From NCBI GenBank assembly GCA_004431415.1, contig QPMI01000188.1:1-64000 (forward strand): DNA of 64,000 bases, written 5' to 3'. Under the pieces are notes generated by a model. It saw only the letters and a list, made by a program, of their open reading frames with translations, made no database searches and was not told where the DNA came from. Source of the DNA: Cyanophora paradoxa CCMP329. Taxonomy: Eukaryota; Plantae; Glaucophyta. A program made the position numbers and the translations under genes. Positions within the stretch are counted from its first letter, which is position 1, and every line of letters starts with the position of its first letter. Shown in pieces: positions 6,001 to 29,467 of this stretch.

Positions 6001-7684
6001 CGCGAGATCCAGAGCCAGACCTAAACCGCCCTTCTAGACCTAGACCGCCTTTATCTTGACCTAGCCTAGTAGACCTCGACCGCCCTCATTGTCTTCGCCT
6101 CTAGGCCTGGCGTAAAAAAGCCCTTACAAATCGCTCCTCTCTCTTTCACCTAAAGCGAGATCAAAACCTGGCCAGACCTAGCCCGGCGGCCCTTCCCTTC
6201 TCTTCTCTCCGCCTCCGGGCCCCTCACAGAAGGCCCCGCGCGCAGCGGACTTCACGAGCGGGGCGCTGCTGGAGGCCGGCCTCGCCTCCTTCGCCCTCAC
6301 CGTCGCCCAGAAGGCCCGCGCGCTTTGAATTCAATTTGATCTGCTCCCCTCGATCTTTTGCTCTCGCGATTTGATTCGATTCGATTCGGGCGCAGGTCGG
6401 CGTGGCTGCGGCCGGTGGGGCCGACGACGCCGCCGCCGCCGCCTCGGCCGCCGCCGCCGCGGCGCTCTCCGCTCTCCCCGAGTCCCGGTTCGGCTCCCGC
6501 CCGGGCCCTCAACTTCGAATTTCCGCCATCTTCTTCTCCTTCGATGCCAATGTATACGTAGGTGCGACGTGGAGTCGGACGAGGGCGGCCCTTTCCTCTT
6601 CCTCTGGTGCTCCCCCGCGGTGCGCGCGCACACACAGTGCCCGTACCCCCCTACCCCTGACGTCGACGTCTCCAGGACGCGGGGGCGGCGGCGCGGGTCG
6701 TGCGCGCCCTCGCGCGCCGCCGCGTCCGATGCTGGACCGAGTGCTCGGTGCCTATATATAGCCAGCGCCCCTCTCCTGTGCCTCTAGCCGCTCGGCTCGC
6801 GCCGACCTCCCTCAGGGCTCCAACGACCCGTCCGCTGGCCCCTCCGGCTCGGACCTCGGCGCCCGCGCCGCAGTGCGCGCACGTCCCGCCCGCCGCCCCC
6901 CCCCCCCCCCCCCCCCCTCCCCCCCTCCCCCTCCCCCCTCCCCCCCCCTCCCCGCCCGCCGACGCCGCGCAGGTTCGCTGCGGGCCTTTGTACCCCTCCT
7001 CTCCCCCGCCTCCATCCGGGACCCCCTCCTCCGCGATCGCCTCCAGGTCCGCGTACCCCCCCCACCCTCCGTACCCTCGCGTACCCCCCTCCGCAGCTCG
7101 CGGAGCTCAACAAGCGGCCGATCTTGCCCCTCCTCCCCTCCGACCTCCCCGTGCGCCGGGCCGCGGTTTCGGATCCACATACCCCCCCCTCCCCTGGATC
7201 ACGTACCCCCGTGCAGACTCCCTCCGACCTGCCCCCGGAGGGCGAGCCCTTCGCGTACATCGCCGCCGGAAACGTCGCCCTCCTCGCCGTGCGCGTACCC
7301 CCCGAAACAGTCCCGTCGGGGTTCGACCCGGACCCCGCCCGCAGAATGTGCGCCGCCTCTTCGCCTCTGTGCCCGCCCTCGCGCCGGCGCCGGCCGCGGC
7401 GCCGCGGGAGGCGCCCAGCGAGCGGGGGCCGCTGGAGCGGGAGCTCGAGGATCGGCGGCGGCGGAGAGAAGAGGCGCGCCTCGAGATCGAGTCAGCGCCC
7501 GCCGCCCCTTCCAGTCTAACCGCGCCGCTCGCAGTTGGCGGCCCGCGTCCGGCAGATGGAGGCCAGCGCCTCGAGGAGGGTACCCCCCGGCCAGAGCCCC
7601 GCGGCCGGCGCCCCGAGCCCACTCGCCCGCCCCCCGCCCTCCTCCTCACCTTCCGCTGGCTCCAAAGCTTGCTCGCTCATGTAA
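1..7684 (+). CDS. Large multi-exon ankyrin-repeat protein (5' partial; may be more than one gene)
   Basis: Ankyrin motifs recur across short introns: [21 protein letters not shown] (~290-360), SALQYAALEGRAPVVALLLE (~1425-1490), TPLVAACAWGHYECAALLLEAGA (~2040-2110), SALGLAASRGHVAAARALLALGADP (~2340-2415), TALQAALES..LLLARGAALD (~3540-3620), GRTPLHHAVAFG (~5035). The frame is open from the window start. Apparent 1-bp frameshifts near 320 and 470. The 3' end is approximate. Confidence 0.7.
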
Positions 7685-7874
7685 CCCTTGGATCGTAGAT
7701 CTTCCCTAGAACGAGAAAGGAAGCAGCTCGAGTCAAAATAGACTGAATTAAAGATCACCGATCATGATTCAGCGAGTGAGCCGCTAGCGCTGATCATGAG
7801 CATGTCACGAATTCGCAAAAATAACATTAATTGCAATATATATTATTATTGCGAGAATCAGATTGAGAATCAGA

Positions 7875-10681
7875 TCAATACGAGCTGCCGACGGCGGTGC
7901 AGTGGAATTCCTTGCGGGCGCCGCCGCACGCGCAGGGGCGGAGGCCCTTGGCCCTCGCCCAGGCGCGCATATCGCCCTCGCTGCTGAAAGCGTAGCCCGT
8001 GATGCCGGGGCGGGCCCGGCTGTACACGTAGTTGTCGCGGTTCATCATCACGCAGCTCAGACCCAGGTCCTCCCCCTCGTAGAGGGCCGGGCAGCCGGCA
8101 AAGTGGTACGTGCACGAGGGCCCTGTCGCCGATACGAGCACGAAGCAAACTGACCGCTTGCCCCAGTACTGGTACACGAGCTGCGCACGCGAAACCCGTT
8201 TCGATTTAACGCATTTGATCATGAGGACGCCTGCTCGCAGAAAAGAAGTTCCTCGAATATAATGTTTCGCGCACTTTCTTCGCAGACACGTCGCGGATCA
8301 CTTCAGGGCTCGGGAGCTCGCGATTCAGATCTTGAACGCCCCCAGCTGTGATCATCGGCCCGGATCCCGAGCGGTCCCGCTCCTGCAGCTCTGCGCCGCG
8401 CGCGGCCGCGAAAAGTGATCATGACCGAATTAATTATATCGAGTTTTAGAGTTAAGCGTTTAGCGTTTAGCGTTTCGCAGTATCGAGGTTTGATCCCTAT
8501 AGCTACGTATACCGACGTCCAGCTCACAGCGCCCGGCGCGCACTGAGACCGTCGTCGGTGAAGAGCTCGAGGCAGCTGCCGTCGCGATCGCTGTACATTT
8601 TCGGGTGGTACCGGTCGTCGCGGATGTGAGCGAGCAGCGCGCGCTCGTCCGCCGCCTGCCGTTGTTCGTCCGCCGACAGACGCTGCTCATCCGCCGACAG
8701 CCGCGTGTCAAGGCTCTTCATCTCGCGCCTCAGCTCCTGGAAGTACTCCTGCGCTCTCACGATAATATGCATGATCAACAACCGCCTTGATCAAAGATAT
8801 CGATTAATTGCAAGGGGGGGTACCCCCTCCCTTGCTCCCCTGGTGAGTTGGTGCGGCGTACTTTCTGTGTTAGCAATTTTTGTAAGATGCGATTCTTTGC
8901 ATGCGCTCTCGTATAGGTGTGATCGCATCGTAGCCGCTGCGAGCGGCCGAAAAAAATGCAAGGGCGGGGCTGCGCAAACATGTCGAAGTCGCGCCTCACC
9001 TGCTATCGCTATACGCGCCGGACCACGTGCTCCTGATTGCTCTCGATGCGCTCTACAAACTTTGTCATACATGCCCGGGCTCGAGAAGCGGCGTGCGGCG
9101 CGCTAGGCCGCCTCAAGTACCTGTTGTACCGGGCGCCGAAAAAAAGCGCTCCTGAGAGTTGGAGGAGATCGTGTTGCCGTACCCGTACTTCGTTCTCCTG
9201 CGTCGTCATGGCCCTTCGCCCGGGTCCGCGGCCGACAGACGTAGTCGCAAGCGAAGTTGAGCTTTGCTCGAGCTTGCAGCCTTGCTCCGACCCGCGCGGC
9301 TGCCATCCGGGCGGCAAATGCACTCGCTGCGGGAAGCACTTCACTCGGCAGGACAACCTGTATAAGCACGTTCGCCAGTGCAGGAAGAAGGCGCCCGCGA
9401 CGCCGCGTTTCGGTGCGCGCCGCTTGGACGAGTGTGCGCCGATGGTTCTGAGTGCCCCGCGCCCGCCGTCAGCAGATTCAAGCTCGGCGATTCCGATCTC
9501 TTCAAACATGCCACACTCTTGCCAGATGGAAGGCCTAGGTGATCTCGCGCGCCGCCCGGCAATCCCAAGCTGGGCGTGCACATTCGACGACGGCTCTGAC
9601 AAGGCCGGTACGGTCGGGTGCAGATCTTGCCGGACTCCGGTTCAGGCGGACTTCAGCTCGGCGATGTCAAGCCCTTCAAGCGCAAGCACGGGCGGATCAC
9701 CACTCGCACGCCTCGGCCCGCGGCCGGGGCGCCGGACTGGATGCGTGGCTTGACCCGCGGCCGGCGCTCCGCACTAGCTGTACTACGGTAGCGGAGGTGG
9801 CGGCGTCGCAGTATTCGCAGCTGCTCCTAGTACGCCGCGCCGGGCTGCTTCCCTGCCCGCTGCTCCCAGCTGCTCCGCGCGCCCGCTGCTTCAGCAGCTG
9901 CTCCCTAGGCCTAGGCGCCCGTCGCCCCGCCCGCTGTTTCAGCTTTGTCGACTCCAGGTTCGCCCCGCCGGCGCCGCTGCTGCCGGCGCCGCGCGCGTCA
10001 CCCGGCCGACCTCGCTGGGCCCCGCGCCGGCGCCGCGGCTGTCCGGGGCGAGCTGACGCCTCGGTTCTGCGCAGGCTATGCGCAGGGCTCGGCGCCACCT
10101 GTCGCTCCGCCCGCTTTCTCGCCCGCCGCCCCGCCGGCTGCTTCAGCTTCGTCGACTCCAGGTTCGCCCCGCCGCTGGTTCGCCCCGCTGCTGCTTAGCA
10201 CCTGACCCGGCCGCCTCCGCTGGGCCCCGCCCCCACACGGCCGCTGTCCGGGCGAGCTGACGCCTCGGTTCTGCGCATGCGCAGGCTACGCGCAGGGCCC
10301 GGCGCCACCTTTCTCTCCTCGGATGCCGCTTTTCCGCCCGCCACCGCCCTCGCCTGCCCGCCCACCTGGTGCCGCCGCCCGCGTCGCCACCCCACCTACC
10401 CGCCTCGCCACCCCGCCCGCCTCGCCCAGCCGCCCGCCTTGCCTCTCTAGCTGCCCCCCCCGCCCCCTCCCCTGCGCCCCCCGCCTCCCCCCCAAGTACC
10501 CTGCAATGTGTACCAGTACCCCCCCTTGCACCTCCGCGCGCGGCCCGCACTTGCCGCACTTGCACAGGGCCGGGCGCGGTCTGCTAGTATTGCGATCGGC
10601 TGCAGCTGCGCATGTGAGCTTTCCGCGCACCTCGTACCGCTTGCGGTGCTCCGGACGGCGCGGGGGCTTATCGATATCCAT
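7875..10681 (-). CDS. Small 4-exon protein, copy 1: coiled coil plus C-terminal Ada-like His/Cys motif; intron 1 interrupted by a transposon
   Basis: Exons: MDIDKPPRRPEHRKRYE (10681-10631); EYFQELRREMKSLDTRLSADEQRLSADEQRQAADERALLAHIRD.. (~8748-8545); ELQERD..PEVIRDVSAKK (~8390-8275); LVYQYWGKRSVCF..TYHFAGCPALYEG..GLRPCACGGARKEFHCTAVGSSY* (~8180-7875). Colinear with the paralog at 11290-12158. Confidence 0.75.
9207..9415 (+). CDS. C2H2/C2HC-type zinc-finger fragment carried inside the element
   Basis: KCTRCGKHFTRQDNLYKHVRQC (C-x2-C-x3-F-x5-L-x2-H-x3-C) in ORF 9037..9753, followed by a GTGCGC donor-like site at ~9413. Confidence 0.5.
9920..10320. repeat. ~205-bp imperfect tandem duplication inside the element
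   Basis: CAGCTT.GTCGACTCCAGGTTCGCCCCGCCG...GAGCTGACGCCTCGGTTCTGCGCA..GGCGCCACCT occurs at ~9940-10100 and ~10144-10310. Confidence 0.85.
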
Positions 10682-11289
10682 TTGCAGCTGCGGCGCGCCC
10701 CGCGGCGCGAAAATCAGAACGTACGCGCGCGTGTGTGAACGCGCGTCGTTTGCATAGCGTTGCACCCGCTCAAGCTTATAATTATAAGGGCGCGGCACGT
10801 GCACTGGCCACCGGGCGCGCGGCGCGCGCGCCGATCGACTAACCCCGCGGTCGACGTCTTGCGCCCTTGACTGACGCGGCCGGGCCTCCAATCTCTCTAA
10901 GATTTTCGCCGATTCGATGCCGATTCGACTCATGATCAAGGCCGGGCCCCTAGCCTCGATGCCGATTCGACTCATGATCAAAGAATTCGGATTCCTCTAG
11001 ATCTCGATCTAGCTATATGAATTTTATCATAGTATATAAATCGATATCTGGGGAGGAATTAATTTGTTAAGGGCCAAAACCGGGCATGAATCATTGAATG
11101 CATTCCGCGCCCGCCTGACTACGCATATGCAGCTGTTTCATGTATTGAAATTAGCTTAAGCCTTTTGATCATATGCATGATCATTAACTATAAAGCCTTG
11201 AAGCGTATACGTAGCTGTAGCTATATATAGAAATAGCGCGCATGATTGCTTCACAAGCTCAAGCTTGTAATTGTAATTGTACATGTGGA

Positions 11290-12158
11290 TCAGTACGAGC
11301 TGCCGACGGCGGTGCAGTGGAATTCCTTGCGCGCGACGCCGCAGGGGCGCAGGCCCTTCGCCTTGGCCCAGGCGTGCATCTCGCCCTCGCTCCCGAAAGC
11401 GTAGCCGGCGAGGCCCGGGCGGGACCGGCTGTAGTTCACGTGGCCCAGGTCCTCCCCCTCGTAGAGGGCCGGGCAGCCGGCAAAGTGGTACGTCGCCCCC
11501 GTCGGCGTCACGAAGCACACCGACCGCTTGCCCCAGTAGTAATAGACGAGCTGCGCACCCCAGATTAAATTTCGATTTCTGAGCGACGCCGATGCAGAAA
11601 CTGAAACTAATTATAAGCCTTGCGAGCGAGGCCTAATTATATGTATAAGGAACAACATTGAATGAATCTCGAAGTCTATAAATTTGCGCGCACCTTCTTC
11701 GCGGTCAGGTCGCGAATCACGTCGTGCGGACTCGGGGGCTCGTTGAAGCTTGAGGGCCCGAAGCTGTCCCGCTGCTGCAGCTCTGCGCACGCCCCGCGAA
11801 AATTACTCGACTCGATTCCGGCAACGCGAAAAATTAAACGATTTGCAACCCCGTCCCGCGCGCGGGGCCGCGGGCGGCAGAGCGCTCACTAAGCACGTCG
11901 TCGGTGTAGAGGCAACTGTCGTCGCTGTTGGGGTGGTCGCGGATGTGCGCGAGGAGCGTCCGCAGCGCGCGCTCGTCCGCCGCCTGCCGCTGCTCGTCCG
12001 TCGCCAGTCGCTCCTCGAGGCCCTTCACCTCGCGGCGCAGCTCCTCGAAATACTCCTGCGCGCTCGGAAATTCATCCTGATGTCTCGTAGATCCGCTGCG
12101 AGCTTATGCGCACCTCGTACCGCTCGCGGTGTTCAGGGCGGCTCGGGGGCGCGTCCAT
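11290..12158 (-). CDS. Small 4-exon protein, copy 2 (apparently intact)
   Basis: MDAPPSRPEHRERYE / EYFEELRREVKGLEERLATDEQRQAADERALRTLLAHIRDHPNSDDSCLYTDDVL / ELQQRDSFGPSSFNEPPSPHDVIRDLTAKK / LVYYYWGKRSVCFVTPTGATYHFAGCPALYEG..AWAKAKGLRPCGVARKEFHCTAVGSSY*, with GT-AG introns. Confidence 0.8.
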
Positions 12159-12543
12159 CTGCGCCGCGGCCGTGAGAAGCGAAGTCAACGTTGAGTCGCA
12201 TGCAATATTAATGCGGCGGGAAATCGGCTGCACCTGCTCGAAGGCGCCGGCGCCGGGCGCGCGGTCGTCGCCGATTTCGAAGTTCTGCGCGCATGATCAT
12301 GAAAAGCCGCATCAGACCGTCGTATGCAGAATTCGGGCGCGCATTGCGCGCGCGGCCTGCAGCTGACCCCGCGGTCTTGCGCCCACATTGTGCTGCTGCT
12401 CTAGTTTCCTCGTTTTGAATTTCTTCTCCCCTTGGTTTATATCCAAGCTACAGTTCGATCTATAGATCTAGATCGTACGTGAGCTCGAGCTAGCTAGGAA
12501 TTCGCAATACAATTAATTGTAAAGTTCTCCGTACGTATAACAA

Positions 12544-12590
12544 TTGCAAGGGGGGAAAGAAGACCGAAGGTCTTCCCCCCTTGCTTCCCG
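12544..12590 (+). mobile_element. Hairpin terminus related to the 5' end of the 8808 element
   Basis: AATTGCAAGGGGGG-AAAGAAGACC-GAA-GGTCTTCCCCCCTTGCTTCCC has the same AATTGCAAGGGGGG...CCCTTGCT frame as 8806-8840. No matching distal inverted repeat was found. Confidence 0.45.
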
Positions 12591-13802
12591 TTCCCGGAGG
12601 AGAGGCGGAGGCGGAGGAGAAGGAGCTCGAGGTAAAGGGGAACGGCGCGAAAGCGGACCAGGGGGATCAAGAACATGCAAAAGGGCAGTCAAAGTTCTCC
12701 GTATACGCATACTAAGTTATTGGGGAAGGGTAAAACACTTCCCCTGTCCCTCTCCTTTGGGCCCAACCCTACCCCAAATCGCGTTTCCCCGACCTCCTCA
12801 AAACCCGGGCCGCGCGGTACACCCTGAAAGCCCATCCCCAGGGGACCCCGAAACCGTGTCTCCCGGTCCCGTCCGACCAAAGGGTGATCCAGGAACAGGC
12901 ACCAACACCCGGGACAAAAATGGGTCCAGCGACGCACAGGGAGCAGATATACGGGCCAGACCAGTTCGAGGTCAATGCTTGCATCATGCTTGACATTCCG
13001 TTCTGCAGGAACGAGGCCGGGCACGAGCGCGGTCGCGTGGGAGGACGCCGCGCGCGCTAGCCAATCACATTGGAGAGTGCGAACTTACCCTGCAAAAGTC
13101 TTTTTACGGTCCCCCCCAGCCGTTAATATTAGGTACCGCGCTTATTCTCGAAATCCACTGCGAGAACGCCAGATACATTACCCCCAAGTGAAACTAAATT
13201 CAAAATGTCAGCGCGTTAATTTAATAAAAAACGGCAATTTTAATTTTGCCCCCCCCCCCGCGGATCGATATCGATCGATCGAAGATCAGTTTAGGTTTTA
13301 AAGAAATTTTCATGCATGAAGTTCGCAGTCGCAGTGCCTACGCGCGTTCCACGCGCGTACCGCGCGCGCGCGCGCGTCACGGCGTACGTACCGGTACGGA
13401 CCGGGTCGGACCCGTACGCCGTGACGGTTACTACGGTACGTGCCACGGTGCGCCGCCACGGACCACGGTGCGCGTCGTGACCGTCGGACCGTGCGCATGC
13501 ACGTGTGACCGTCGGACGCGGGGCGACGCGAGCCGCCGGCCAGCCGCTCGCGACGACGACTCGTCCACTTGAGTCAACGTCATGACTGTGCTCGACTCTG
13601 TGAGCTGCCAGGCTGTCGGGCAACTTCTAAAAAAAATAAAAAAAACCCTTCACCCCTTCACCGGTACCACAGTACTACCACTACGTATATATACGATCCG
13701 ACTCGGCGTCGAGTTGGCGTCGTAACTTGGCGATCGGTTGACGTGTGTCACCACTGTCACGGTCCCGCGCGAGTCGAGTTTTCCCCAGCAGTTTAAGCTG
13801 GC

Positions 13803-13967
13803 CAGTGGCGTGCATGGAAAGTGGTAGATAACGGAAGTAACGGAAAACTGAAGTGGCGGATAACGGACGTTTCCGGAAATTCCGGAAAGTAACGGACAGC
13901 TTAAGTGGCGGATAGCGAAAAGTAACGGAAAGTAACGGAAACACGTACGCGTGCCACGGTGTGCACT
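13803..13967. mobile_element. Degenerate MITE-like unit with (T)AACGGA(A) and AAGTGGCGGATA internal repeats
   Basis: Starts CAGTGGCGTG and ends in a disrupted CACG..CCAC..CACTG. Contains about 6 TAACGGA motifs and 3 AAGTGG(C/T)(G/A)GATA motifs. Confidence 0.35.
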
Positions 13968-14636
13968 GTACTACGGTAATCTGCCGCTGTTAACGTTCTA
14001 CTGCTATAGCTACTGTAGGCTTTAAACGTAGCTACAGGCTACAGCCTGCAGCAGCAGCCGCTGAGCTGTCGTTACCCGGCCGCGGTTGCGCTTATTTAGC
14101 AACCGTGTACATACCGTAGTACGTATATACTAGTGCTACTGCGCATGCAGCTAGCCGTTGAGCGCTGCTGCGCATCCTTGCAATTGTGCAGACGGAGCAC
14201 ATCATGACCAGCAGGTAAATTCGAAGTCAACGCGTACGCGTACGCAGCGCTAGCGAAAACAGTGATTATTTCGAAGCCGCTGAGCACCCGTTCCTTAAGT
14301 AGCGCGACTGTATATTCGAATACGTATACGAAGCCGAGGAAGATTATTCTTTTAATTTGTCCTGAAAACGTCTGCATGTAAATTGCTTTCTTCCTGCATG
14401 TCCGACAGTCATCATGGCATGGTCATCAGTAAATGGGGGGGTGCGGGGGGGCTTGCCCCCCTGCTTGTAACAATATATATTTATATTGCGCATATATGCG
14501 CATGCGCACGGAACTCCGAATTAAACACATGCGCATGCGCATGCGCATGCAAATTCAATCTCAGTCGCGTGTTCTGAAGTCGACAGACTGGACGGATCCG
14601 GACCCACGGCCGGGACCCCGCCGCCGCGGGCGCCAC

Positions 14637-14788
14637 CAGCTGCAGATCTAGAAGAGGCCGCATCCTGCCCGCCGGTTCAGACGTCCTCCGCCCAGCCTGG
14701 GCCAGGGGTCCGCGAGTCCTCTCAGCTGAGGCTCTCGAGCTCAGCTCATTTACTCGGATCGGCAGCTGCAGATCTAGAAGAGGCCGCA
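14637..14788. repeat. Direct repeat CAGCTGCAGATCTAGAAGAGGCCGCA x2
   Basis: Identical 26-mer at ~14637 and ~14763. Confidence 0.8.
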
Positions 14789-15262
14789 CTCGGGAGTATA
14801 CCTTTACAGTTCTTGCAATGCGAGCCACATGCCGCATGCTGCAGCTGGCCATGGCCGCGGGCTCTAGTTATAAGCGCGCTAGCCTATAGCTAGTAGCCTA
14901 GTAGCAATCGCAATAATAATCGTCCGGCGTCAATCGCCAAGTCGTGATGATCACAGTACAATTTTCGTTGCTGTGAGACGTTTATCTGTGAAAAACTTTA
15001 GCTATCATATGAACGATACATATACACCGATTGAGAAGCCCATTTCAGGGCATGGCTCGATCGTGGTACGGATATCGATCTAATACTTCAAAAAAATCCT
15101 ACTGCTAATTATATAACCGAAAGCGAAATTGCGAAAATTGGAAGAAGCGCTTTAAGACGCTCGCCACTATTTTATTGAGGCCGCCTAGGCGCCAAGCCTT
15201 GAAGGTAATGTAGTCCAACGGTCGACGACGCTGCGGCAGTGTCGAGAGATCGACGCATTGCT

Positions 15263-18200
15263 TTAGGTCGCCGCATGCAGCGCGAGGGCGACGGCGATGG
15301 ACACGAGGCCGCAGAGGAAGCTCGAGAAAAGCGAGCTCTGACCGCGCAGGGGTAAGCGATGAGCAGGAGAGCGATGGCATGGGGCTAAAAGCTCGCGAAC
15401 CGCGTAGGTGGACGCTGCAGCATTCGGCCGGTAGGGCACCGAAGCGCTGGTTCCAACCGGCGTCCACTGGAAAGCCTGCGCGCACAGCGTTGGAAACCAA
15501 AAAAAATTTAAACTTGAAAGAAGGATTGCGGGTTATGTATAAATGGACGTTCTGCTGCCAGGCTGAACGACAGCGAACCTTGCCGATAACGATGGGCACG
15601 AAGGCGGGCGCCCCGGTGGCCGGATCGATGCGGAGGTCGTACTGCGGAAAAGTGCGAGTGATCATGAGCTCATCCTGTTTCGAACTCGAGCCGAATGGCA
15701 GTGCTGGCTTAAAGCTTACGGCGGTGTTGGCTGCAAACTGGAGGAGGCGACGACGCGCAAGTGCCGGGGCCTCTGCGAAAGATTGGATTTGAACAACAAT
15801 GTAGAGATATCGATGAAAACTTGGAGAAAGCTTCGGCGCACTGAATTGGAGGATCGCGTTGCTGCCCTCCGCCACGACGGACTCTTCGGTCGCCGGGCGC
15901 TCCATCTTCCCGTCCACGCTGACAATGGAAACTTCCACATTGGCCCCGACCTGCGGATATGAAATTGGCGGCCCAACAAACGCGACAGGGTAATTTGAAC
16001 CCTCATTATCAAAGCATCCCGGCGCACCGCCAGAACGCCGGTGACTGGGACCCTGATGAACTCGTTCGCGCCGGATCCCGTCTGCCAAACGGAGCCCCTT
16101 TCAGGCCGCCATGTACATGCATACGTGCAGATGTGTTTGCAACTTCAAGTTCAGCTGCCAATTACCTGCCGTGCAGAGAACTCGGTCCGATTCAGGTCGA
16201 CCCTGTACACGGCATTGCCTTTCCCGTCCTGCCCAGGTGAAGCACGAGCGTTCATAACGTTAACACGGACAAGGTGCACGTGTATTTTCGGCTTTTAAAA
16301 AAGCACGATACCGTGTCGAGCCTGAAGTCGTTTTTGGTGAACTGTATATTTAAAAAGCAGTACTCGTCAGACGATGGAGCCGGGGACCCTTTTCGGACAA
16401 GGGGATTCAAAGTCGAACCGTGAAGGAGCCGATGACGACCTGCTTCGTCTCGTTCATGGTGATGAACGACTGCGCGCGGCGCGGCGGGCTTCAACGACAA
16501 CGACGTCGACGCCGGAGACGCCGAGGGGGGCTCGTGATCAGAGGGGCCGCACCAGCGGCGGCACGGCGGCCGGAGTCGGTGCCGGTGTGGGCTGATTCTG
16601 CTGCTGCTGCTGGCTGGGCGTCGCCATGGGCGTCGGAGTGGCGTCTGTCGTCGAGGGGACCGTGGTGGGTGTCGGGGCAGCATCCGGGGACGTGGTAGGC
16701 GAGGGAGACGGCGTGGCCAGCGCGGAGGGAGACGGAGAGGGCGACGGGGACGGCGAGGGCGAGGGGGACGGCGTGGGCGACGGAGTGGGCGACGGGGACG
16801 GCGAGGGAGACGGCGTCGGGATGTACACTGTACGCGATGCGCGAAACGGTAAGCACGGATACATCGATGCCCAGGAAGATGCGATCGAATGAATATTTAT
16901 GCGCGCTGTGCGCCGCACGCGCACCCGTGCCGTTCAGCCTGTGTGCAAAGACGAATGCGGCGCCCAATGTGGGTGCTTCTCCGCGCCAGCTGGCATAGAA
17001 GACCGGATTGGTGCGAACACCGATGCTGGTCAATCCAAGGCCGACGTGAGCGGAGCTGCGCATGCATTAAAAACCGTTCGGAGTAGGCAACGCAGAAACC
17101 CGATCCCGGCCGCCGCCTATCAGCAACCTCGAAGCTCATGATCACCTCGGGTTCGTGACCGAATCGATCCTCTGTTCAACCACCTCGCCGCCCGTGGAAT
17201 TCACTGACAAGATGAAGCTGCTCGATGCGGTGCCCGTAGCGTCTTTGTCGTAGATCGACGCCAAGAGCCGCCAGTACCCGTACCTTCGAGTAGGAGCGAG
17301 GTTCATTGTTCGTAAATGAAACGACAGTTCAACGGTTTTATAATTATCTGAATCGACATGGCGTACGCGTTCTTGACAACGGCAAGGTCTATCGGAAACT
17401 TCCAGGAGGCGTGGGACGCGAAGATCGACCCCGTGACACTCGACCCCGTCGCATCGATCTGGTCATGATCATGGATTAATATTGAATGTCAGTTTCAATG
17501 TCAGTTTTGAATTATACGATGCAGATCTAGAATTACGAACTTTGGTGATGGTTCCGCCGAATGCGACCTGCGAAAGAGCATCATTGGACAAATGAGCGCA
17601 TTCTTTTTTTATTACAGATCTTATAATTATATATATATATATAGCGCAGTCGACGTCTAGATCTGTTTTATCACAGATCTAGATCTTCTGAAAAATGTAT
17701 ACTCACGTAGAATATCGGTTTACCGCCGACGTCCTCTACAGTCATCGCGACAGGAAAGGCCTGGGCAGTGTTTTTATCCGTCGGTAGCGTAAGTCCGCCC
17801 AGCGATGCAGCCTCCACGGTGAAATCGGTTCGGAGACCGGTGCCTGTTAACGTTGAGCATGCGCATAAGCGCGCCGATCAGCGTACAATAACATAATTAT
17901 AATGCAGTGGCGGGTGCGGGGAAAGCAGAGCATAGTGAATGAACCCACCGTCCTCTGCGTAGCTGAACAGGCTAGGTAGCGGAAGCGCGAGCAGACCGCG
18001 TCTGGCAGCGGCTGTCGCCGCAACGCCGATCCAGTAGAGGCGGCCTCCGTGCGCCGCGATTGCCGAAGGAAGGTAATGATTCCCTGGCGTGATATAAATT
18101 CGTTTCATCAGTGTTTCGCTGAGCTGATGCTTCGCAATTGTTATTGAACGAACCGGCGATGGCTGAGCTCGAGGCTCCGGCCGCGGGGGTTCCGGACGCG

Positions 18201-19213
18201 TCTATGTTGAAGGAGTAGAAGGTTTTCAAAGTGTTTTGAGAGGGATCGGAGTTGAGAGTGACGGCGCCGAGAAACAGTTTGCCACCACCACCATCTCCAG
18301 CTCCGAGGAAGAAGAGCTTCGAAGCGCTTCCGACTGCCAGAGGCATTTTCTGCAAGCCAGTATTGATCTTCCCGTTCCTGCGCCGAACGCAAGACGACTC
18401 TTGAGCAGAAAGATTGTGGTGACGGCCCTCGCGATCGTATATATATCATGATGACGTAGAAAAGACGAGATATATATGAACGTTTAATGCACCCGAACAC
18501 AGTAGTAGCAGCGATGGCTGTAACAGCGGAAGCGCCGGCGGCCGGCAACCCATCCGACCACTTAACTGTATTCAAACGGTTGATGTCAGCGAGATATTCA
18601 GATAGGAGTAGAGGACACAAAATCAAGTGAAACGCGCGCACCTTCAAGATTACCCGCAACGAGCGAAGATCCGCATGTGCTGTCCACGCGAAAAATGCCG
18701 TTGTAACCGCTGACGTACAAGCTGTCATCGAAGGTCGAGTACGCCATTCCTGCACGATACACGATCACATGTGCCACGGTGAGCGCAAGGTTTCCGACGC
18801 TCTTCTCGACCTATTCATAAGTAACCGTATACATGCATATGCATTTAATTTTCCACTTAACTAATTCCCATATGCGCTCACCGAGAATGCCAGAAAACTG
18901 TGTCGCGGAACCCACTCCTACGGTCGAGGTACCGTAGGACGAGTAAGTCTTCCCAGCGCAGAACAGGGAACTGCCGGCCTCGAGGCTGTCGGGATTCGCC
19001 GGAGGGGCCGCCACGACTGCCGCACGCGCGCGTGCGTGAGATTTTGACGACGGCAAGCGGCCGGACAATCCCGGCCGCGGCTGCACCAAGAGTGCACTTT
19101 TAACTTGGCGGCGCAGATCTAGACGCACCGCAGGCGACGAGGATGGAGGCGACGGCGAGCCGCATCGCGAGTGCGCGTGCGGTCGCGCGTCGCGATCGAG
19201 GCGAGCTGTCCAT
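15263..19213 (-). CDS. Multi-exon secreted/GPI-anchored surface protein with (SP/TP)n stalk
   Basis: N-terminal MRLAVASILVAC signal-like stretch; globular exons (e.g. SKLFFLGAGDGGGGKLFLGAVTLNSD); [15 protein letters not shown] tract at ~16700-16820; an RRRLLQ motif at ~15740-15755; hydrophobic C-terminus SSLFSSFLCGLVSIAVALALHAAT*. Confidence 0.7.
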
Positions 19214-19844
19214 GGGCGATCTCATTGCGATCGATCTCTTGTCTTGAGCTCGCGGATGCCTCGAGAACCAATTCTAGATCTGCTCAGCTGTGGCTGCAGC
19301 TGCGTCCGGCGCTGGCGTTGAAGCCTTCTTGCCAAGTTGAGGATTTTCGACAACTTGTAAATTTCCGTCAACAGGAGGACTCCGGGACTCTGAGGCGCAC
19401 TGAGGCACTGCGGCACTGCGGCAAACGATAACTGACGTTTTTAACTGTAGTACTCGCGGGCCGCGACCGCGAACATGGCCAGTAATACAGTAATTCAACG
19501 TTAACGATTGATAATGTTACTCACGACTCAGAGTCGCAAGTACCGTTACTACCGTGTGAGCTCACTGAGTCACATGTACATGTACAGTGAGCACGTGTAA
19601 CCGTTCAACGGTTGAACGTTTGGGATCCGATGATCCTGCGGATTCCTGCCAGGATGTCTCAGTGAGTGACAGTGACAACTACTGACTATATGCTATAGCT
19701 TGTAATCGTCAGTGATTTCTGAATCCTCCGAGGCTCGCGATATCGATCGAGCTTAGGACCTGCGCATGCCTCATCGAAGACTCTGAGCCTCGAAACTCTG
19801 ATGAAACTTTGAAAAACGTTTTTGGACCCGGACGTTCCGGACCC

Positions 19845-19972
19845 CCAACAGTGAGTCACAGTAGGGTCCGGCCGAGCCGCTGGAAACAGCGGCGCGTGGG
19901 GAGGGGGGCAACCCCCTCCCTGCCTGGCCGGACCTATCCGAGCAAATTTTTTTTCCAACAGTGAGTCACAGT
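19845..19972. other. Multi-hairpin cassette between 18-bp direct repeats
   Basis: CCAACAGTGAGTCACAGT at 19845-19862 and 19955-19972. Between them an outer stem GGTCCGGCC/GGCCGGACC encloses hairpins GCCGCTG-GAAA-CAGCGGC and GGGAGGGGG-GCAA-CCCCCTCCC. Confidence 0.7.
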
Positions 19973-21084
19973 GTGACAGGGAGCAACATGTACAAGGACA
20001 CCCAAATCATTGAATTGGGGCCCCAATGCGGACACCCGTAAAAAAACTCGGCTCTCACGGAATGGACCAGGCAGCTTTTAAGAAAAATAAATGCGATAAT
20101 GTTTTTCCCTTCACTGAGTCACTCGAGCTCGCAGACTTCGAACTCGGGACGTGCATATGACTTGGCCCGTGGCGGTTGAAGTTGGCGCACCGCCGCGCAC
20201 CGTGCGGCGCACGGTGGCGGTCGGGTACTGTAGTACGCCGGCGTAACGCCGCGTACCAGTACCGTCACGGCAGTACGTGGCACCGGCCGGACGCTACCGT
20301 ACGCGTAGCACCGGTAGCGCTAGCCTGCAGGACATGCGACAGGCGCGCCGCGCGCGCGGCATGCCGCAGTGCATTCGTCACAAAATAATATTGTCGAAAT
20401 TAAGACTTCACCGAAGTGTATGCTACCTAGCGCTGTCGCCGCGAGCCTGACGAATATAAACGAAATAAAGACGCTGTCGAAGATTCCTACGTTTACAGTA
20501 GTATACGTACGTATAACCGCAGGACTTGCGCGCAGGCTCGCGGCGGCCACTGCAGCTGCAGTTCCAGTTCCGCAGCGCCCGTCCCCCCCCGCGCCCCTAG
20601 GCCTTGTCCTCGTGCGTGCGCTCCGGATCCTCGCCCGCGCGCACCCCGTCCTCCGATCGATATCGGAATTCGTGCGCTCCCCGCGCCGGGGCGCCCCGCT
20701 CCCTCCGCGGCCCCGGGGCCCCCGCGCCCCGGCTCTGATGCCGCGCCCCTTGCCCATCCTCAAGCCCCCCCGCCGCCCTCCTCGCCCTCGACGTCAAGGG
20801 ACGAGCTGGGACGTCGACCGCGCAGTCGCGCGAGTCGGCGCGACTAGGAAGCAGGGACGGTACCCCCCCATAATCCCGCCAGTATCAAATACTAGTATTC
20901 GTCAAAGCGAGGGTCTGATCATGATGAATATCGACGAAATAACGACAGTGCACACAGTTTACAGTTTACAGTAGTACGTATAGCCAACGCCGCGGTATAG
21001 GTAGTACGTACCGTACTACGCGGCTACGCCTAGTACGGTCACCGGGTACCGGGTACTACGGCGGGTAATCTTTAGGTACGTAGA

Positions 21085-23165
21085 CTGAGCCTCGGAGGTC
21101 GGGACTCGGGACTCGGGAGTCGGGACTCGGGACTCGGGAGTACTAGTCGGAGTCGGAGTCAGAGTCACCGAGTCGAATATTTGATACTTGTGAATTGAAA
21201 AATTTGAATGGAGACAGGGGTACCAGCAGCTGACTTGTCTATGGCGAATTCGAAGTTGCGGGGTTGACGAAAATATGCATATGATGCTGGCGATCCATAA
21301 TTTCGTCACGATTTTCGGGTTTTGTCGAGACTGTACTACGGTACATGTGGCCGGCAATTTACCAAAACCCAATTTGTCGAAATTAAGTCTCGACAAAAAT
21401 TCATACAGTTACAGGAGATCTACTCGGATCATCGGGAGTCGGGAGTCGGAGGAGATTGTCGAATCGACTCGGATCGTCGAATCGACTCGGGAGTCGGAGG
21501 AGAGTTTTTCTTGTGCTAAAGTTTAAGTAGTAAAATAAGTACCAGTTGATTCGAATCGGGAATCGAAAATAAAAAGCACATGGGGCGCGGCCGTCGGGAA
21601 TTCGAATCGATGTATTGATAATTAGATATCGATATCCGGACCGGGATGACGGCGGGATATCGATTCCCGGTGTTCGTATACCTATACAATTCAAATTCAG
21701 AAATATCAATTACTGGCTTTTCAAACCCAAACCCTTCGATCAACGTTAACCGACTTTTTGCTTTTCTGTTTTATTTGCTTTTACTTTCTTTTTCTTTTTT
21801 GTTTTTATTTGCAGACCGTCGAGTTTGGGAGTCGACGGGAACGGGTCCTCGCATGCGCATGCGGAGTTCAGGGGAACCAGGCTACCAGCAGCTGACCTGT
21901 CTATGGCGAATTCGCAGTTGCGGGGTTGACGAAAATATGATGCCATGATGCTGGCGATCCATATTTTCGTCACGATTTTCGGGTTTTGTCGAGACTAGCG
22001 CTAGCTGTGGGCCTGCAGCTGTGGCCGGTAATTCACCAAAACCCAGTTCGTCGAAATTAAGTTGACGAAAATTTGTTCGTTTACAGTAGTTCTACTTGGA
22101 TCGAGTGCATCGGATCATCGGATCGTCGAATCGACTCGCGATCGGGAGACGGAGGAGAGTTTTTCTTGTTACCGTCTTTTCAAACCCTTCGATCAACCGA
22201 CTTTCTTCTTTTCTTTTTATTTTCTTTTTCCTTTTTGTTTTGATTTGCAGACTGTCGAGTCGGGGTCCTCGGGAAGTCGACGGGGACTCGGCGGCGAGTC
22301 GGCGGACTCGGCGCCCGAACTTCGGAAGAGCTGCGGATCCTTGAAATACCGTAGTACTCCTGCGCATGCGCCGCGATGATGCGCGCTCGGAAATTCATCC
22401 TAATGTATCGTAGATTCACTGCCAGGCTGAGTCACCGCGAGCTTTACCAAGTTAGCAGTTTAACTTAGCACACCTAGGCCTCGTACCGTCGTTCGTGCGT
22501 CACGGCGTCACGGAACGGGTAACGTATACGTACCGCTCCCGGTGTCCAGGGCGGCTCGGTGTCCATCTGCGAGGCTGCGCGGCTGCGCATGCACATGCGC
22601 AGCGAGAAGCGAGGTGCACGTCGTCACCGCCGGCGTCACGTCGATTCGCGCGCAATAAAATATAATCTTCAATTAAATCGAATCGGCCTTGTCAGTCTCA
22701 GAGTCTCGAGTCTCAGAGTCTGCATGCGCAGCTGCAGCCTGCAGGCTGCAGCTGGGCCGCCCGGCCGCGCCGGGCCCCCGGCCGGCCCCGGCGGCCCGCG
22801 GCGCGCCGGCGGGCCCGGGGAGGGCCGGGAGGCTGGGAGCCTGGGCCCGGCGCCCGGGGATCCGGACTCGCGATCGCGAGTCGCGATCCGGACTCGGGAT
22901 TCGGGAGTCGGGACTAGCTATAGGGCTGTGGTCGCTCGTTGTTGCTTCGCTCGCGAGGTTCTAGCGGCCGCTACCGTACGCGTAGTACGCTCGGCGTTTT
23001 CCGCCAGCGGCGCCTCCTCGCTTGGCGTTTTTTTGTGGCCGACAGGCGCCAAAAACAGCCCCACCCCGCTTTTTCCTCATCTGAAGGTCAACCTGGGTCC
23101 TTTTTCTGAGTCGCGACTCGCGACTCGCGATCGGGATTCGGGAGTCGGGACTCGGGAGTTGGGTC
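21085..23165. mobile_element. Decayed DNA-transposon-like repeat block with GGAGTC/GGGACTC subterminal-type repeats
   Basis: (GGGACTC/GGAGTC)n clusters at 21098-21175, 21435-21500, 22860-22915 and 23105-23160. A diverged tandem duplication spans ~21220-21860 and ~21880-22310. No transposase ORF was seen. Confidence 0.55.
22341..22660 (-). pseudogene. Relic third copy (exon 1, intron 1, start of exon 2) of the 11290-12158 gene
   Basis: GCGCGCTCGGAAATTCATCCT.ATGT.TCGTAGAT and GTACCGCTC.CGGTGT.CAGGGCGGCTCGG match 12058-12150. The copy is interrupted by small insertions and truncated. Confidence 0.75.
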
Positions 23166-23450
23166 CGAATCGCCGAGCCGGGAATTCGAGCACTTCATTC
23201 AAAAAAGAGTGTGAGAGAGCTCGAGAGGCTCGAAATGGTGAAAGGAGGCGAGGGGTACTGTTCAAATCAACAGCGCCCTATACATAATAATTAAATGCAG
23301 CGCTCCCAAAAGAACATCTAATTGAATATTGCAATTGATGCTCGCGGTCGATCGTGAATCGCCAGGAGCTATAATTACATCACGCTGTCTATGGCTAAGC
23401 CTCCAGCAGTTGCCCCCAGGCCCCGGGCCGACATGGACAGCCTGGCAGCG

Positions 23451-26400
23451 CTAGCGGGGCGCGGCGCCGGCAGCTGCAGCGGAGATCTCCTTGGCGCGGC
23501 GAGCGAAGAGCATGTCGATCTCCCTGCGCGCCCGCTCGTCGGGCGCGCCCTCTTTCGCCTCCTCCACCAGCATCTCCACCTGCAGAGCATCGATATCAGG
23601 AAGGCGAGATTAAGGAGGCACCTGGCTTTATGTTAGCTCTATGTCTCGCGAGCTGGGCATGCGCAGACAGCTTTAATTTGCTTTAAATTTAATCATTGAA
23701 TTTGGCGCACCATGACATCCAGCGAGTCGAGTACAGTTTTCAGCGCGTCCTCCTCCCTTTTGCCCGCGTTCGGAATCTCATCCTTCAGCGTTTCCAGCAG
23801 GCGCCGCCGCAGAAAGCACTCCGGGCGGAGCACCAGCACGGGACCAGTGAGCGCTAGACGATGCAGCACGCGGTATCTGGGCAATCAACCGATTGAGAAT
23901 TTCAGTCCTTGTTCCACAAAGTAAATAAAAAATTCTAGAGCAGCAATTGCAACGTTTTAACGCTCACACTAGCCCGTCTGCTCTCAGAGCAAAGCGGCCA
24001 GCGAGCCACGCCATGGTTTCCTCCGGGCCCCACTTTAGCACCTGCGGTACGGTCAGCGAGGACACTATTTATACGCGAAGATTTAAAGCCAAATTCGAAA
24101 GGCGCGCCAAACCCGCGACTGGATTCAGAGCTAGCGCTGCGGGCGTTGCAGGCGCCACCTCCCCCGCCGCCGCGGATTCGAAGCCTCCGGCCGAGGGTGC
24201 AGCTGCAGATGACGGGAGCCCCGGCGCAGGCCCGGGCTGCGCTGACGCCTCGGGAGGTGCGGTCGTGGCCGTGGCGGGCGCCTCGAGATGCAGCGAAACG
24301 GATGGATCCAGAGCTCCAACGGGTACAGGTGCAGGGGCTGCAGCTGACGCCGTAAGCGCCGCGGATGTGGAGCTCGCGATCGATACCGCATGCGCATGTC
24401 CGGATCCGGCACTAGCGCTGTTGAAACTCGAGCTCGAGCTCGACGATGGAGCAGCAGCCGAGGCCGGCGGCGTCGAAGTCGACGTCGCATCAATATCGCG
24501 GCGGGAGCTCGAACCGCGTGTGCAGCCGGCCATGGGCGCCGTGGTCGTGGTTGTGGCCATGGGCGCATGCATCGATATCTCCGGACCGGCAGCCGCCTCC
24601 GGTTCCGCTGCCGATCGCAACGCGTACGACTCCGTGGCCGGCCGCGGCATGCCACAGGACCCGGAGCTGGAGTGACTGGCACGCCCCGAGCTAGAAGAAG
24701 GCTCACGATCGAGCCGTGCAGCAGGCCTTTCGATCCTCTGCTTCTTGGCGGGAGGCTTCTCCGGTCGTGGGCCGGGCTGATCGACGTCATCATCACGATC
24801 ACGATCAGCTCCAGCTGCGTGACGGGTCGAATTCGATATAAATAAACATGTACAGCATTAATCATCAGCGGCATCAGCGGTTCGCCGGGCGCGCTGACGC
24901 GCACCCGCGTCCTCACGATCGTCGTGGTTCTGCGCGATTTCAGAAAATTGCGAGGGATGTTGAGCGAGCAAGGATCTCATGATAATAATAAAGCGTGCGG
25001 GATTCGATTGCAAGCGCACCATCGGAGCCGGTGCCGCTCCCATATCCGCGAGAAATTTGCGGACAATCGGGAAGAGGACTACGGGATCCTTGCTCTTCGG
25101 CAGATTTGCTAAGAATGCAGCGCGCTGCAGCGCCTCGAAGAAATTCTCCTTTTTGTAATCTGCATTTGAAATCGATGCGGACGTGTATTATGATTACGTA
25201 AGCGTGCGATAGAAACCCCGCGTGATGCAAATTTGAAACGCACCGCTCTCCGGAAAGTTCAGCGATTGTTCTGTCAGCTTCGACGTGAAGCCCTGCGCCT
25301 TGTCGACCCGCATGCACGTAATTATGAAGCGATCGCGCAGCCGAGTAGAATTCTGCCCACCAGTCAGCCTCGCATTTTATATCTATACAGATATCGATCT
25401 AGAACTACGTATACAGCACAAATCGGCCATGCGCATGCACACCTCGAGCGTGTTAGAGACTGGCGTGGTGAAATGCTTGCCCCTCCAATTGAAGTAGCCA
25501 CTTGAAGAACGCGTACGCTTCCTGATCATGACCCGCATCCCTTTGTATCCACATCCTGCGGCGAATGTCAATGAATCAAATTCAAAGCTGCAGGAGGCTA
25601 ATTATAAAGCGCAAGTAATCTATAGGCTACCACGTGCACATTAATATTAGTACACGCATACGTGCGCACATACACGTATACACGCATATATATAGCGCTG
25701 CGCATGCGCGGCCGCAGGCGCGCCTTTTTCGACCCGACCGGAGCCATCGCGATCGCCGCTCTCCGAATCCAGCTGCACCTGAAGCTGCCGGCTCGAAGCG
25801 GCTATACGTCAATCTCTAAGAATTTGCACAAAGCTTCGGCGATATATACGCCTTAAGGCGTGCTCGATGAACGCACACAGTCGCGTATGAATTCGCGAAT
25901 CGCAGCGCGACGGCCTTCGTCTGTGGCGCTCTCGCGCTTGAGGCGCTCCTCCAGCTTGCCAGCCCCCAAATCGGCGTAGAACTGCTCCTTCTCGTACTCT
26001 GCACGGTCATAATTGTGTAAATGTAATGATGTCATATGGATGTGATGTTCTTTAAGTTGATGTGATGGATGGGGGAATGATTTCAAGTGAATATAGTTAA
26101 AATTGCGCCCTGCCGAAAACATAGACAGCTGCAGCGCTAGTGCAATGCATGCACACCAGACCGATCGAAGTTCAGCTTGTCGTCCGAAACGCAGTCCGAC
26201 TCGGGGATGCCCGCTTCTCTGTCGACGCGCTGACAGCAGATAATCGCTCGGTCGCGAAACCGGGCCGTTTCCTGCACACGCGCACGCGCATGCGCGCGAA
26301 CGATTGCGAGCAGTCAAACGATCGATATCGCGGTGTCGCAAAATAATAGATAAACGCGCGCTATAGCCAAAGGTTGGCGCGAACCTCAGCAGTTGCCGTT

Positions 26401-27554
26401 TGCACACAGAAGGAATGCTCGCGCCACAAAAAGCTCCCGCGCCAGCTGCCCTTCTTCCGTGTGACTCCGTGGAAGCCGGACGTGCTAGTGGTCTTTCGAC
26501 GCCGACCCCGCAACGTCGACGGACGACGAGCTCGAGGCTCGAGCTCCTCCTCTTCATTGTCGGAGCTCAAGTCGTCTTCATGATCAGATTTGGTGCTAGA
26601 TTCATCTCCGGATCCTCCGTCTCCTTCATCCGAGTCGTCTTCGTACTCGTCTTCTTCGTCTTCTCGAGCTCGCTCAGCGCCCTCGATCGTTTCATCGACA
26701 TCCAAGTCGATCGTCTCCTTCGTTGTAGGCTCCTGCGGCACGTACGTGCACCGATTGATATATTCCGTGCGCATGCATATGGTCAGATCTAGAGCTGCTC
26801 CTTGCGCATGCTATCGCGGACTAGTAATGTATCGCGCTATCGAATTCATAATATCGATCAGACCTGCGAAGGCGAATTTGAGTGGTACCGCTTGAAGAAG
26901 GCCAGCACTTTGTCGCGATAATCTTCGTCTACGGATAGATCTTCTGGGAGTTCGAGTTTATTCTCATTCAAAGCGACGTAGAACTTCTCTTCTGTGTACT
27001 CTGAAAGAAAGAAGCAAAAGTCAGCATGCATTTGGGCACATGCATTTGCATATCATTTGCACAGCGAGAGATGATAGATCGTGTAAATGTAGAAGAATTG
27101 GTTTCGAACCTGAAAGGGGATAATGACGAATGGAGTGCCGCAAGGGCTCCCATCCCGCCTTCTTGTCAACAAATCTGCATATGATCGCGAGGCGGTCCCG
27201 GATTCTGGTCGCTTCCTGTGCACGTGCACATGCGTGCAGAAGTGGTGAGCTCGAGTTCACGTGCACGTTTCAGATACTTGCGAAACGCGACTTGCAATCG
27301 GCGGCGCGGACCTCTTCCGTGTCGCCTGTCATCGTTATCTGTATATATATATGCATATTCAAAGCAAACTCAGCAAAACTCATCGCCCGCGATATCGATA
27401 TCGTGCACGTGGCATGAAAAAGATGACGCACGTCGCGCTGATGCCAGCTGAAACGAGCTTTGAAACGGCCATTACTCATCCGCGAGATACCAGGCCGCGT
27501 TGATATCGATGCTGCGCATGCTTGACCGGCCATAGCTGGCGCCCGCTGCGCCAT
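23451..27554 (-). CDS. Multi-exon protein with three AP2-like DNA-binding domains (possible frameshift)
   Basis: Spliced repeats: GISRMSNGRFKARFSWHQRD-ITMTGDTEEEATRIRDRLAIIC..HYPLSEYTEKKFY; SGFHGVTRKKGSWRGSFLWREHSFCVQTATAEETARFRDRAIICC..KLNFDRSEYEKEQFY; GYKGMRV..GYFNWRGKHFTTPVSNTLENSTRLRDRFIITC..SLNFPESDYKKENFF. Also an acidic linker, an Ala/Ser-rich linker and a helical C-terminus. Confidence 0.7.
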
Positions 27555-28794: not shown

Positions 28795-29435
28795 ATGCTC
28801 CTCTCTTCCGCCCTCTTGGACATGGACAGCGTCAGCCCCGTCGCCCTCAACTTCGTGGCGCAGCCGCCTGCGAGCTCGGCCCCGCCTCTCTCGGGCGCGG
28901 ACGTGGCCGGGAGCAGCAGCGCCGGCAGCTTCAGCGCCGGGGGCAGCAGCGGCGCGGGCGGCTCTGGTTCGAATTCCTCCGGAGGCGCCACGGCAGCGAG
29001 CGGGGCGAAGCGGATGAGGCCGGACGCGCGGGACCGCGGGCGGATGCGGTCGACGCGCGCGCGGCGCCAGGCGCCCTGCAGCGCCGTCGAGACCGACGAG
29101 CCGGTCCGTCCGTTGGGCGCTCCTCTCGCGCCGCGCGGGTCCCGACGCCGCGCGCAGCGCAACTCGGAGTTTGACCTTTGGACGGCGCCGGCGCTCGAGG
29201 CGGCCCTGAGCGGCGTCCGCGCGGAGCCCGTCGCGCGCTCCGCCGACATCGAATCGGGCGACTCAGACTGCGACGCGGTGCGCACCTCGCGCCCGCCGCC
29301 CGCCGCTTGCCGAGGCCGACGGCCCCTGGCGCGCAGGTTGAGATCTCCCTCCGCGCCGAGCCCGCCTCGCCTTCCTCCGAAGTCTCCGTCCTCCGGCGCT
29401 CGCGCCCCGCCGCGTGGGCCCCGCCGCACCCGGCC

Positions 29436-29467
<32 letters not shown>

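Follow-up and report, generated by a model that had tools for sequence, protein, structure and literature searches.

The first 64,000 nucleotides of contig QPMI01000188.1 of the glaucophyte Cyanophora paradoxa CCMP329 (the window, below) are scattered with short palindromic scars. In the commonest form, a triplet X has become X-rc(X)-X, where rc(X) is the reverse complement of X, with a gain of 6 bp (+6 scars). In a second form, X-C-rc(X)-G-X, the gain is 8 bp (+8 scars). The first-pass annotation of this DNA had described the +6 pattern as a pervasive insertion signature and had read it as the trace of transposon excision. The pattern is now confirmed by the coordinates then listed, by pairs of filled (scar-bearing) and empty sites, and by its excess over Markov expectation and over controls of the same composition. 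With a probability of roughly 0.6, the scars were left at donor sites by cut-and-paste DNA transposons, of a kind that makes short target duplications and, upon excision, leaves covalently closed hairpins on the flanking DNA. Excision footprints and P nucleotides are themselves textbook matter. We have found no description of such scars occurring this densely and in two exact forms. The earlier statement that scars so dense were undescribed holds for the 2019 Cyanophora genome paper and for our full-text literature searches; in that paper the string 'palindrom' is absent, 'footprint' is used once in an unrelated sense, and repeat content is given as low (PMC6704402).

All scar counts are for the 64-kb window, and expectations were derived from order-1 or order-3 Markov models fitted per 4-kb block. 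With |X|=3, the 9-mer X-rc(X)-X is found 421 times in the whole window, against 71-81 expected with the two models. Trivial (GC)n or (AT)n runs account for 75 of the 421 raw matches; once trivial X (GCG, CGC, ATA, TAT and homopolymers) are dropped, 336 9-mers are left, for 37.6 ± 7.2 expected. The scars are unevenly spread. The window has 67.7% G+C overall and contains, from about 8 to 28 kb, a tract of lower G+C content (54-63%) bordered by gene-rich DNA of 70-79% G+C. Density reaches 16-29 9-mers per 2 kb within 8-28 kb and falls to 0-11 per 2 kb past 30 kb. In positions 6001-30000, the scar-rich tract on which most counts were made, 237 copies are observed for 10.4 expected. Positions 30001-64000 hold 70 copies for 22 expected, at about one tenth of the density. 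As controls, the rearranged words X-X-rc(X) and rc(X)-X-X, which have identical base composition and embed the identical palindrome, were counted in the scar-rich tract and were found 20 and 22 times, respectively. The excess is thus 23-fold over the local Markov models and 11-fold over the same-composition controls. Since the rearranged words are far rarer, neither a general richness in palindromes nor base composition can explain the signal.

The excess is also specific in length and in spacing. When lengths k of X were compared in 6001-30000 with trivial X removed, k=3 dominated the spectrum, with 241 observed for 10.8 expected and 21-24 in the controls. Two minor spikes accompany it, at k=2 (187 observed, 84 expected, controls about 100) and at k=5 (5 observed, 0.1 expected, none in the controls). 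At k=4 the 5 copies observed compare with 1.1 expected and 4 in the controls, and for k of 6 or more there are none, for about zero expected and 0-1 in the controls. The excess that the first-pass annotation predicted for |X|=3 is therefore present, and the smooth length distribution that it had set against its own reading is not seen. Truncated forms with one or two inverted bases (+4, +5) reach 1.3-1.6 times expectation, which corresponds to a general inflation of the background. As regards spacing, the 237 copies have no spacer at all between X and rc(X), and forms with other spacers of 1-2 nt are near background, C...G excepted. The apparent |X|=6 matches of the whole window are palindromic hexamers repeated three times in a row, that is, iterated 3-bp scars. 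These runs, of CGATCG, TGCGCA and CGGCCG, lie at 4213-4233, 14530-14550 and 28125-28145, and may reflect either repeated scarring of one triplet or slippage of a scar unit. Scars with |X|=2 (+4 bp) appear to exist. For instance, at about 21998-22012 a CT-AG-CT scar carries a nested AGC-GCT-AGC scar, and the two together account for a 10-bp insertion relative to the paralogous sequence at about 21333.

Every class of target triplet is used, with weak preferences (chi2 78.8, 27 df): GCA/TGC, ATC/GAT and AGA/TCT are used about twice as often as expected, and CCA/TGG and ACT/AGT about 0.3 times. No sequence motif was found in the scar flanks.

Comparison of duplicated segments inside the window gives direct views of scars beside their empty counterparts. 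All 13 coordinates given in the first-pass annotation carry the letters indicated there, and the flanks match in its six filled/empty pairs (Table 1), where a single X on one side faces X-rc(X)-X on the other. Two of these +6 scars fall within coding sequence, in a conserved exon of two tandem paralogs (8524-8781 and 11834-12028, both on the minus strand), in which conserved blocks alternate with diverged stretches, showing introns. Each adds two residues; at 8563 L becomes LEL. As the scar is 6 bp long, the reading frame is kept. The last exon of the pair (7875-8222 and 11290-11520, minus strand) has a Cys/His-rich motif at its end. A further comparison is offered by the +6 scar at 21275, the paralogous copy of which bears an independent +8 scar, ATG-C-CAT-G-ATG (21940-21950), on a neighbouring ATG. 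Collapsing both scars by hand restores one common 12-mer. Indel sizes between paralogs, for which a spike at +6 had been predicted, show no clean one: the window paralogs are only 59-76% identical, and a generic aligner splits scars and called three of the six verified pairs automatically. Collapsing the scars reduces gap openings in paralog alignments (from 20 to 12 and from 9 to 6) without transforming these alignments.

The eight-base class is as sharply defined as the six-base one. In 6001-30000, X-C-rc(X)-G-X occurs 46 times for 0.9 expected, and the form with the reverse pair G...C 6 times. When all one-base spacer pairs are counted over the whole window, C...G is found 50 times and the next-best pair 9 times. 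The +8 pattern maps onto itself under reverse complementation, and therefore each end has a C 3' of the duplicated triplet. One-sided (+7) hybrids having the expected base number at most 24, whereas 94 would be expected if the two ends were independent (chi2 170), and one-sided forms with a wrong base are about equally common as those with the expected one. This deficit of hybrids implies that both ends of one scar are made in one concerted mode. The two classes are moreover distributed differently along the tract. Most +8 scars are clustered between 12 and 24 kb, and none occurs in the 24-28 kb segment, the densest in +6 scars (Table 1; Fisher p = 3.8e-6 for the +8 versus +6 split between the two regions). 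Once-mutated +8 scars show no excess in 24-28 kb either (3 for 3.0 expected). In 12-24 kb, the ratio of once-mutated to perfect scars, both taken as excess, is 0.6 for the +8 class and 0.8 for the +6 class; in 24-28 kb it is 1.5 for the +6 class. From local clustering and from these ratios, it follows that the agent of the +8 scars acted locally and comparatively recently. Such clustering is as expected for local hopping of one element, and the whole looks like the work of two agents, one of them hopping locally, rather than of one diffuse repair process.

The amount of DNA written in this way is considerable. Iterative collapse of the perfect scars in 6001-30000 removes 268 events (217 of +6 and 51 of +8), at about one perfect scar per 90 bp. 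The collapsed share of DNA is 7.1% in 6001-30000, 8.4% in 12-28 kb and 1.3% in 30-64 kb. Nested, second-round scars number 27; random re-insertion of as many events gives 15.8 ± 4.2. The excess is mild, and clustering by region could account for it. Perfect scars exceed expectation by about 229, those with one mutation by 245 and those with two by about 200. Near-equality of these classes would be given by a long process running at constant rate under mutational decay. If a steady state is assumed, the rate may be roughly estimated as 229 x 9 / 22,000, or about 0.09 scar per site per substitution unit, which amounts to about one scar for ten point substitutions.

The scars are present in independent reads. 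Logan contigs from four sequencing runs (2012, 2019 and two of 2024) were compared with the unique parts of 18001-24000. They match these parts with 0 substitutions and 0 gaps, the pieces that cover the scars at 21275, 21742, 21940 and 22136 included, so that absence of the motifs from raw reads, which would have spoken against them, does not apply. Within these unique pieces no scar is polymorphic among the four read sets, which probably represent one strain.

How may such scars arise? It may be imagined that an element inserts at a triplet X and yields X-element-X. On excision, each flank would be left as a hairpin with the duplicated X at its tip. Opening of the hairpins away from the tip would give ends made of X followed by its own reverse complement, in the manner of P nucleotides. 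Because the DNA outside the duplication differs between the two sides, the two ends could pair only over the rc(X)/X stretch; flap trimming and fill-in would then produce exactly X-rc(X)-X. If the first nick were made one base inside an element with C...G ends, this base would come to lie at the hairpin tip and the product would be X-C-rc(X)-G-X. The scheme of the first-pass annotation relied on both hairpins being opened and joined through the 3-bp microhomology. As a refinement, we propose that an opening exactly 3 nt from the tip is not needed, the length of the inverted copy being fixed by annealing over the duplicated target. Any opening at the duplication or past it would leave 3' tails that give the one product. 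Annealing limited to the duplication would explain the uniformity of the scars, the missing +4 and +5 forms, and the equality of inverted copy and duplication in the 2-, 3- and 5-bp classes.

Several observations were counted in favour of excision: the geometry, the discrete lengths, the fixed C...G, the concerted ends, the clustering of the +8 class, events that are nested or that arose independently in paralogous copies, the lack of a hairpin-repair signature at blunt breaks, the identity of the scars in the four read sets, and the flank-hairpin chemistry established for other superfamilies. The causal link to elements is drawn from the geometry. A direct 3-bp duplication typically stems from target-site duplication by a transposase, and both copies are kept at the donor site in the 237 scars. 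An inverted copy with no loop points to a covalently closed hairpin that was opened off its tip. CACTG...CAGTG ends have C and G as their outermost bases, and elements combining 3-bp duplications with C...G ends are those of the En/Spm-CACTA superfamily. The fixed C...G of the +8 class matches the residual terminal bases expected from such ends, and the main agent is probably an En/Spm-CACTA-like family, with 3-bp duplications and CACTG...CAGTG ends. Families with 2-bp and 5-bp duplications would then account for the minor scars with |X|=2 and |X|=5, 5 bp with flank hairpins being the Transib/RAG pattern.

Other observations weigh against excision by such an element. The geometry that led the first-pass annotation to an excision footprint stands, in that it fits a hairpin/P-nucleotide footprint with a 3-bp duplication, but the window contains neither the element nor a transposase. 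Terminal inverted repeats (TIRs) flanked by target-site duplications (TSDs) were searched for with arms of 16 nt or more, up to 2 mismatches and TSDs of 2-9 bp, after a looser pass. No TIR element with a 3-bp duplication was obtained in the 64 kb, only GC-rich pairs at chance level. Among CACT[AG]...[CT]AGTG pairs in the window, with or without a 3-bp duplication, none has a convincing TIR; the two motifs occur 53 and 52 times, about 95 each being expected by a rough composition estimate, and are hence not enriched. Large inverted repeats in 6-30 kb are limited to GC-rich matches of 73-74%. No X-element-X site was seen within the window. Open reading frames (ORFs) were scanned against Pfam in sets of 10 of ATG type, 10 long, 110 stop-to-stop (11.5-28.8 kb) and 10 more, and no transposase domain was found in 130 window ORFs (110 stop-to-stop and 20 further long ones). 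Thus the search for 3-bp-TSD TIR elements and their transposases that the first-pass annotation had called for returned none in the 64-kb window. Further, excision footprints of plants are heterogeneous, whereas here nearly all scars belong to one of two forms. To reach a density of about one perfect scar per 90 bp, activity must have been high and sustained, and ongoing activity finds no support in the four read sets, where no scar is polymorphic. The fixed C could in principle have been added by a host enzyme instead of deriving from an element end. Finally, CACTA is not among the superfamilies listed as forming flank hairpins, which have been shown for hAT, Transib, MULE and RAG (PMC5499845).

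Comparison with known systems shows where the likeness ends. For En/Spm-CACTA, donor-site footprints are documented and multiple variants have been recovered from single plants (PMC6379663). As in the present case, a 3-bp direct duplication is kept at the donor site, the C/G ends match the bases of the +8 scars, and target preference is weak. Those footprints have usually been studied locus by locus, whereas here two exact forms make up at least 7% of a 24-kb tract; the window, in addition, is devoid of a CACTA element. The footprints of hAT, Transib and MULE elements accompany duplications of 8, 5 or 9 bp and usually have 1-3 P nucleotides, in variable number. With these footprints and with the P nucleotides of V(D)J recombination, the scars share a perfect, spacer-free palindrome at the junction, as from a hairpin opened off its tip (PMC5499845). 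They differ in that the inverted copy always has the length of the duplication, which suggests that microhomology fixes the junction. A role of this kind is described for mPing/Tourist elements, where the duplicated 3-bp target is the microhomology that guides rejoining (PMC4561436). The outcome described there is precise restoration of the empty site, whereas here the inverted P-nucleotide copy would pair with the other duplication and leave +6.

Among the alternatives, the one that deserves most attention dispenses with the element. A host nuclease, maybe a domesticated transposase, would make 3-nt staggered or hairpin-capped breaks at arbitrary sites, and repair would write X-rc(X)-X, the C of the +8 form being added by an activity of the deoxycytidyl-transferase type. 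That no element is seen in the window, that the scars are extremely uniform, that X preference is weak with flanks devoid of motif, and that the three mutation classes suggest a long steady process all agree with this proposal. It nevertheless needs a new enzyme able to make a direct as well as an inverted copy of 3 bp. It also leaves unexplained the extra discrete 2- and 5-bp classes, the fact that C and G are found together or not at all at the two scar ends, and the confinement of the +8 scars to 12-24 kb beside a tract rich in +6 scars. Blunt-break hairpin signatures are not enriched: words X-rc(X)-rc(Y)-Y, predicted for hairpins at blunt breaks, number 16 for 7 after the scars are collapsed, and this model is not supported. 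Isolated P-nucleotide additions are not supported either, 6-bp palindromes dropping from 987 to 544 on collapsing, for 390 expected; decay of the scars would leave a remainder of about this size. On balance we hold break-and-repair to be unlikely. The same limited credence goes to its corollary, namely that a dedicated or domesticated hairpin-forming nuclease would act genome-wide and that palindrome writing would be the main indel mutation of the lineage and would have built a substantial part of the DNA between its genes.

Replication template switching or snap-back, for instance by polymerase theta, would have the nascent strand copy X, switch to rc(X) and return. It is a known source of small inverted insertions, and template-switch and polymerase-theta insertions do resemble the scars in being small and in carrying a reverse-complement copy of adjacent sequence. 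The nesting slightly above random could also reflect palindrome-prone sites. Insertions of this origin vary in length and mostly include a spacer, whereas the scars fall into discrete classes with no loop and a fixed C...G. The length spectrum is spiky, staying at control level for k=4 and from k=6 upward, and truncated forms show no enrichment; a loop of zero nt would not be expected from intramolecular snap-back; and neither the fixed C...G nor the concerted ends would have a basis. Template switching thus seems highly improbable. An artefact of assembly or sequencing, or chance in a GC-rich and locally low-complexity genome, could be suspected in view of the trivial runs among the raw matches. 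The excess over Markov models and over same-composition controls, the identity across scars of contigs from the 2012, 2019 and 2024 read sets, and the filled/empty pairs inside one assembly exclude it. Excision footprints of transposons remain the reading that we favour.

Table 1. Positions of the scars, with their empty counterparts where present, and of the regions in which they are concentrated.
Feature	Position	Remarks
Scar-rich tract	6001..30000	Lower G+C (54-63%), mostly non-coding
+8 territory	12001..24000	43 of 53 window copies; clusters at 13.4-14.4, 19.3-20.4 and 21.0-22.7 kb
Densest +6 tract	24001..28000	52-53 perfect +6 scars; 0 +8 scars
GAG-CTC-GAG	8563..8571	Empty counterpart GAG at 11909; conserved minus-strand exon of tandem paralog pair
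TCG-CGA-TCG	8582..8590	Empty counterpart TCG at 11922; same exon as scar 8563..8571
GCA-TGC-GCA	10275..10283	Empty counterpart GCA at 10071; 15 identical bases leftward
GTC-GAC-GTC	10850..10858	Empty counterpart GTC at 12374
ATG-CAT-ATG (+6)	21275..21283	
AAC-GTT-AAC	21742..21750	Empty counterpart AAC at 22195; unchanged in contigs of four read sets
TCG-CGA-TCG	22136..22144	Empty counterpart TCG at 21487; unchanged in contigs of four read sets
GCTTC-GAAGC-GCTTC	18316..18330	Rare |X|=5 form (+10)
Further |X|=5 scars	Starts 8396, 13265, 25118, 28118, 62501	
+12 form with C/G spacers	Start 20196	One copy

Apart from the scars, the tract contains several families of repeats. A 91-bp element (19864-19954) ends in T8, has the internal inverted ends GGTCCGGCC...GGCCGGACC and lies between the two copies of a perfect direct repeat of 18 bp (19846-19863 and 19955-19972). 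Its read-derived depth is about 165 times that of single-copy DNA, and positions 19865 and 19955 are joined to many different flanks. This dispersed element of high copy number, with its long target duplication, has no relation to the 3-bp scars. Read-derived depths of 7-110 times single copy are found at 20401-20600, 21095-21160, 21801-22000 and 22601-23200, with a (GGGACTC/GGGAGTC)n microsatellite among the high-depth stretches of 20401-23200. The contigs of all runs break at such stretches; dispersed repeat families thus form a mosaic in the intergenic tract. The tract is not wholly gene-free, since one of the 110 stop-to-stop ORFs in 11500-28800 matches the Pfam family TrAA12-like (E = 1.6e-6). 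Elsewhere in the window, the ORF at 34310-35473 matches LRR_6, and a perfect tandem array with a period of 30 bp occupies 41582-41918 (self-matches at offsets of 60, 90, 120, 150 and 180, 100% identity). A weak match to Gemini_C4 (E = 0.0078) was returned for one scanned ORF.

Whatever their origin, the scars are a major source of mutation in this DNA, perfect ones alone making up 7-8% of the intergenic tract, and +6 scars enter proteins in frame. Aligners and indel models will mis-handle DNA that bears them, and collapsing the scars could improve non-coding alignment in the lineage. If they are excision scars, they constitute a base-by-base fossil record of thousands of transposon visits, which would tell at which sites elements inserted, how frequently they excised and in what way the breaks were rejoined. 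The record would also bear on the chemistry of cleavage: it would give indirect in vivo evidence for a superfamily unlisted among flank-hairpin formers (PMC5499845), and CACTA-type transposases would then use flank-hairpin chemistry with a 1-nt offset.

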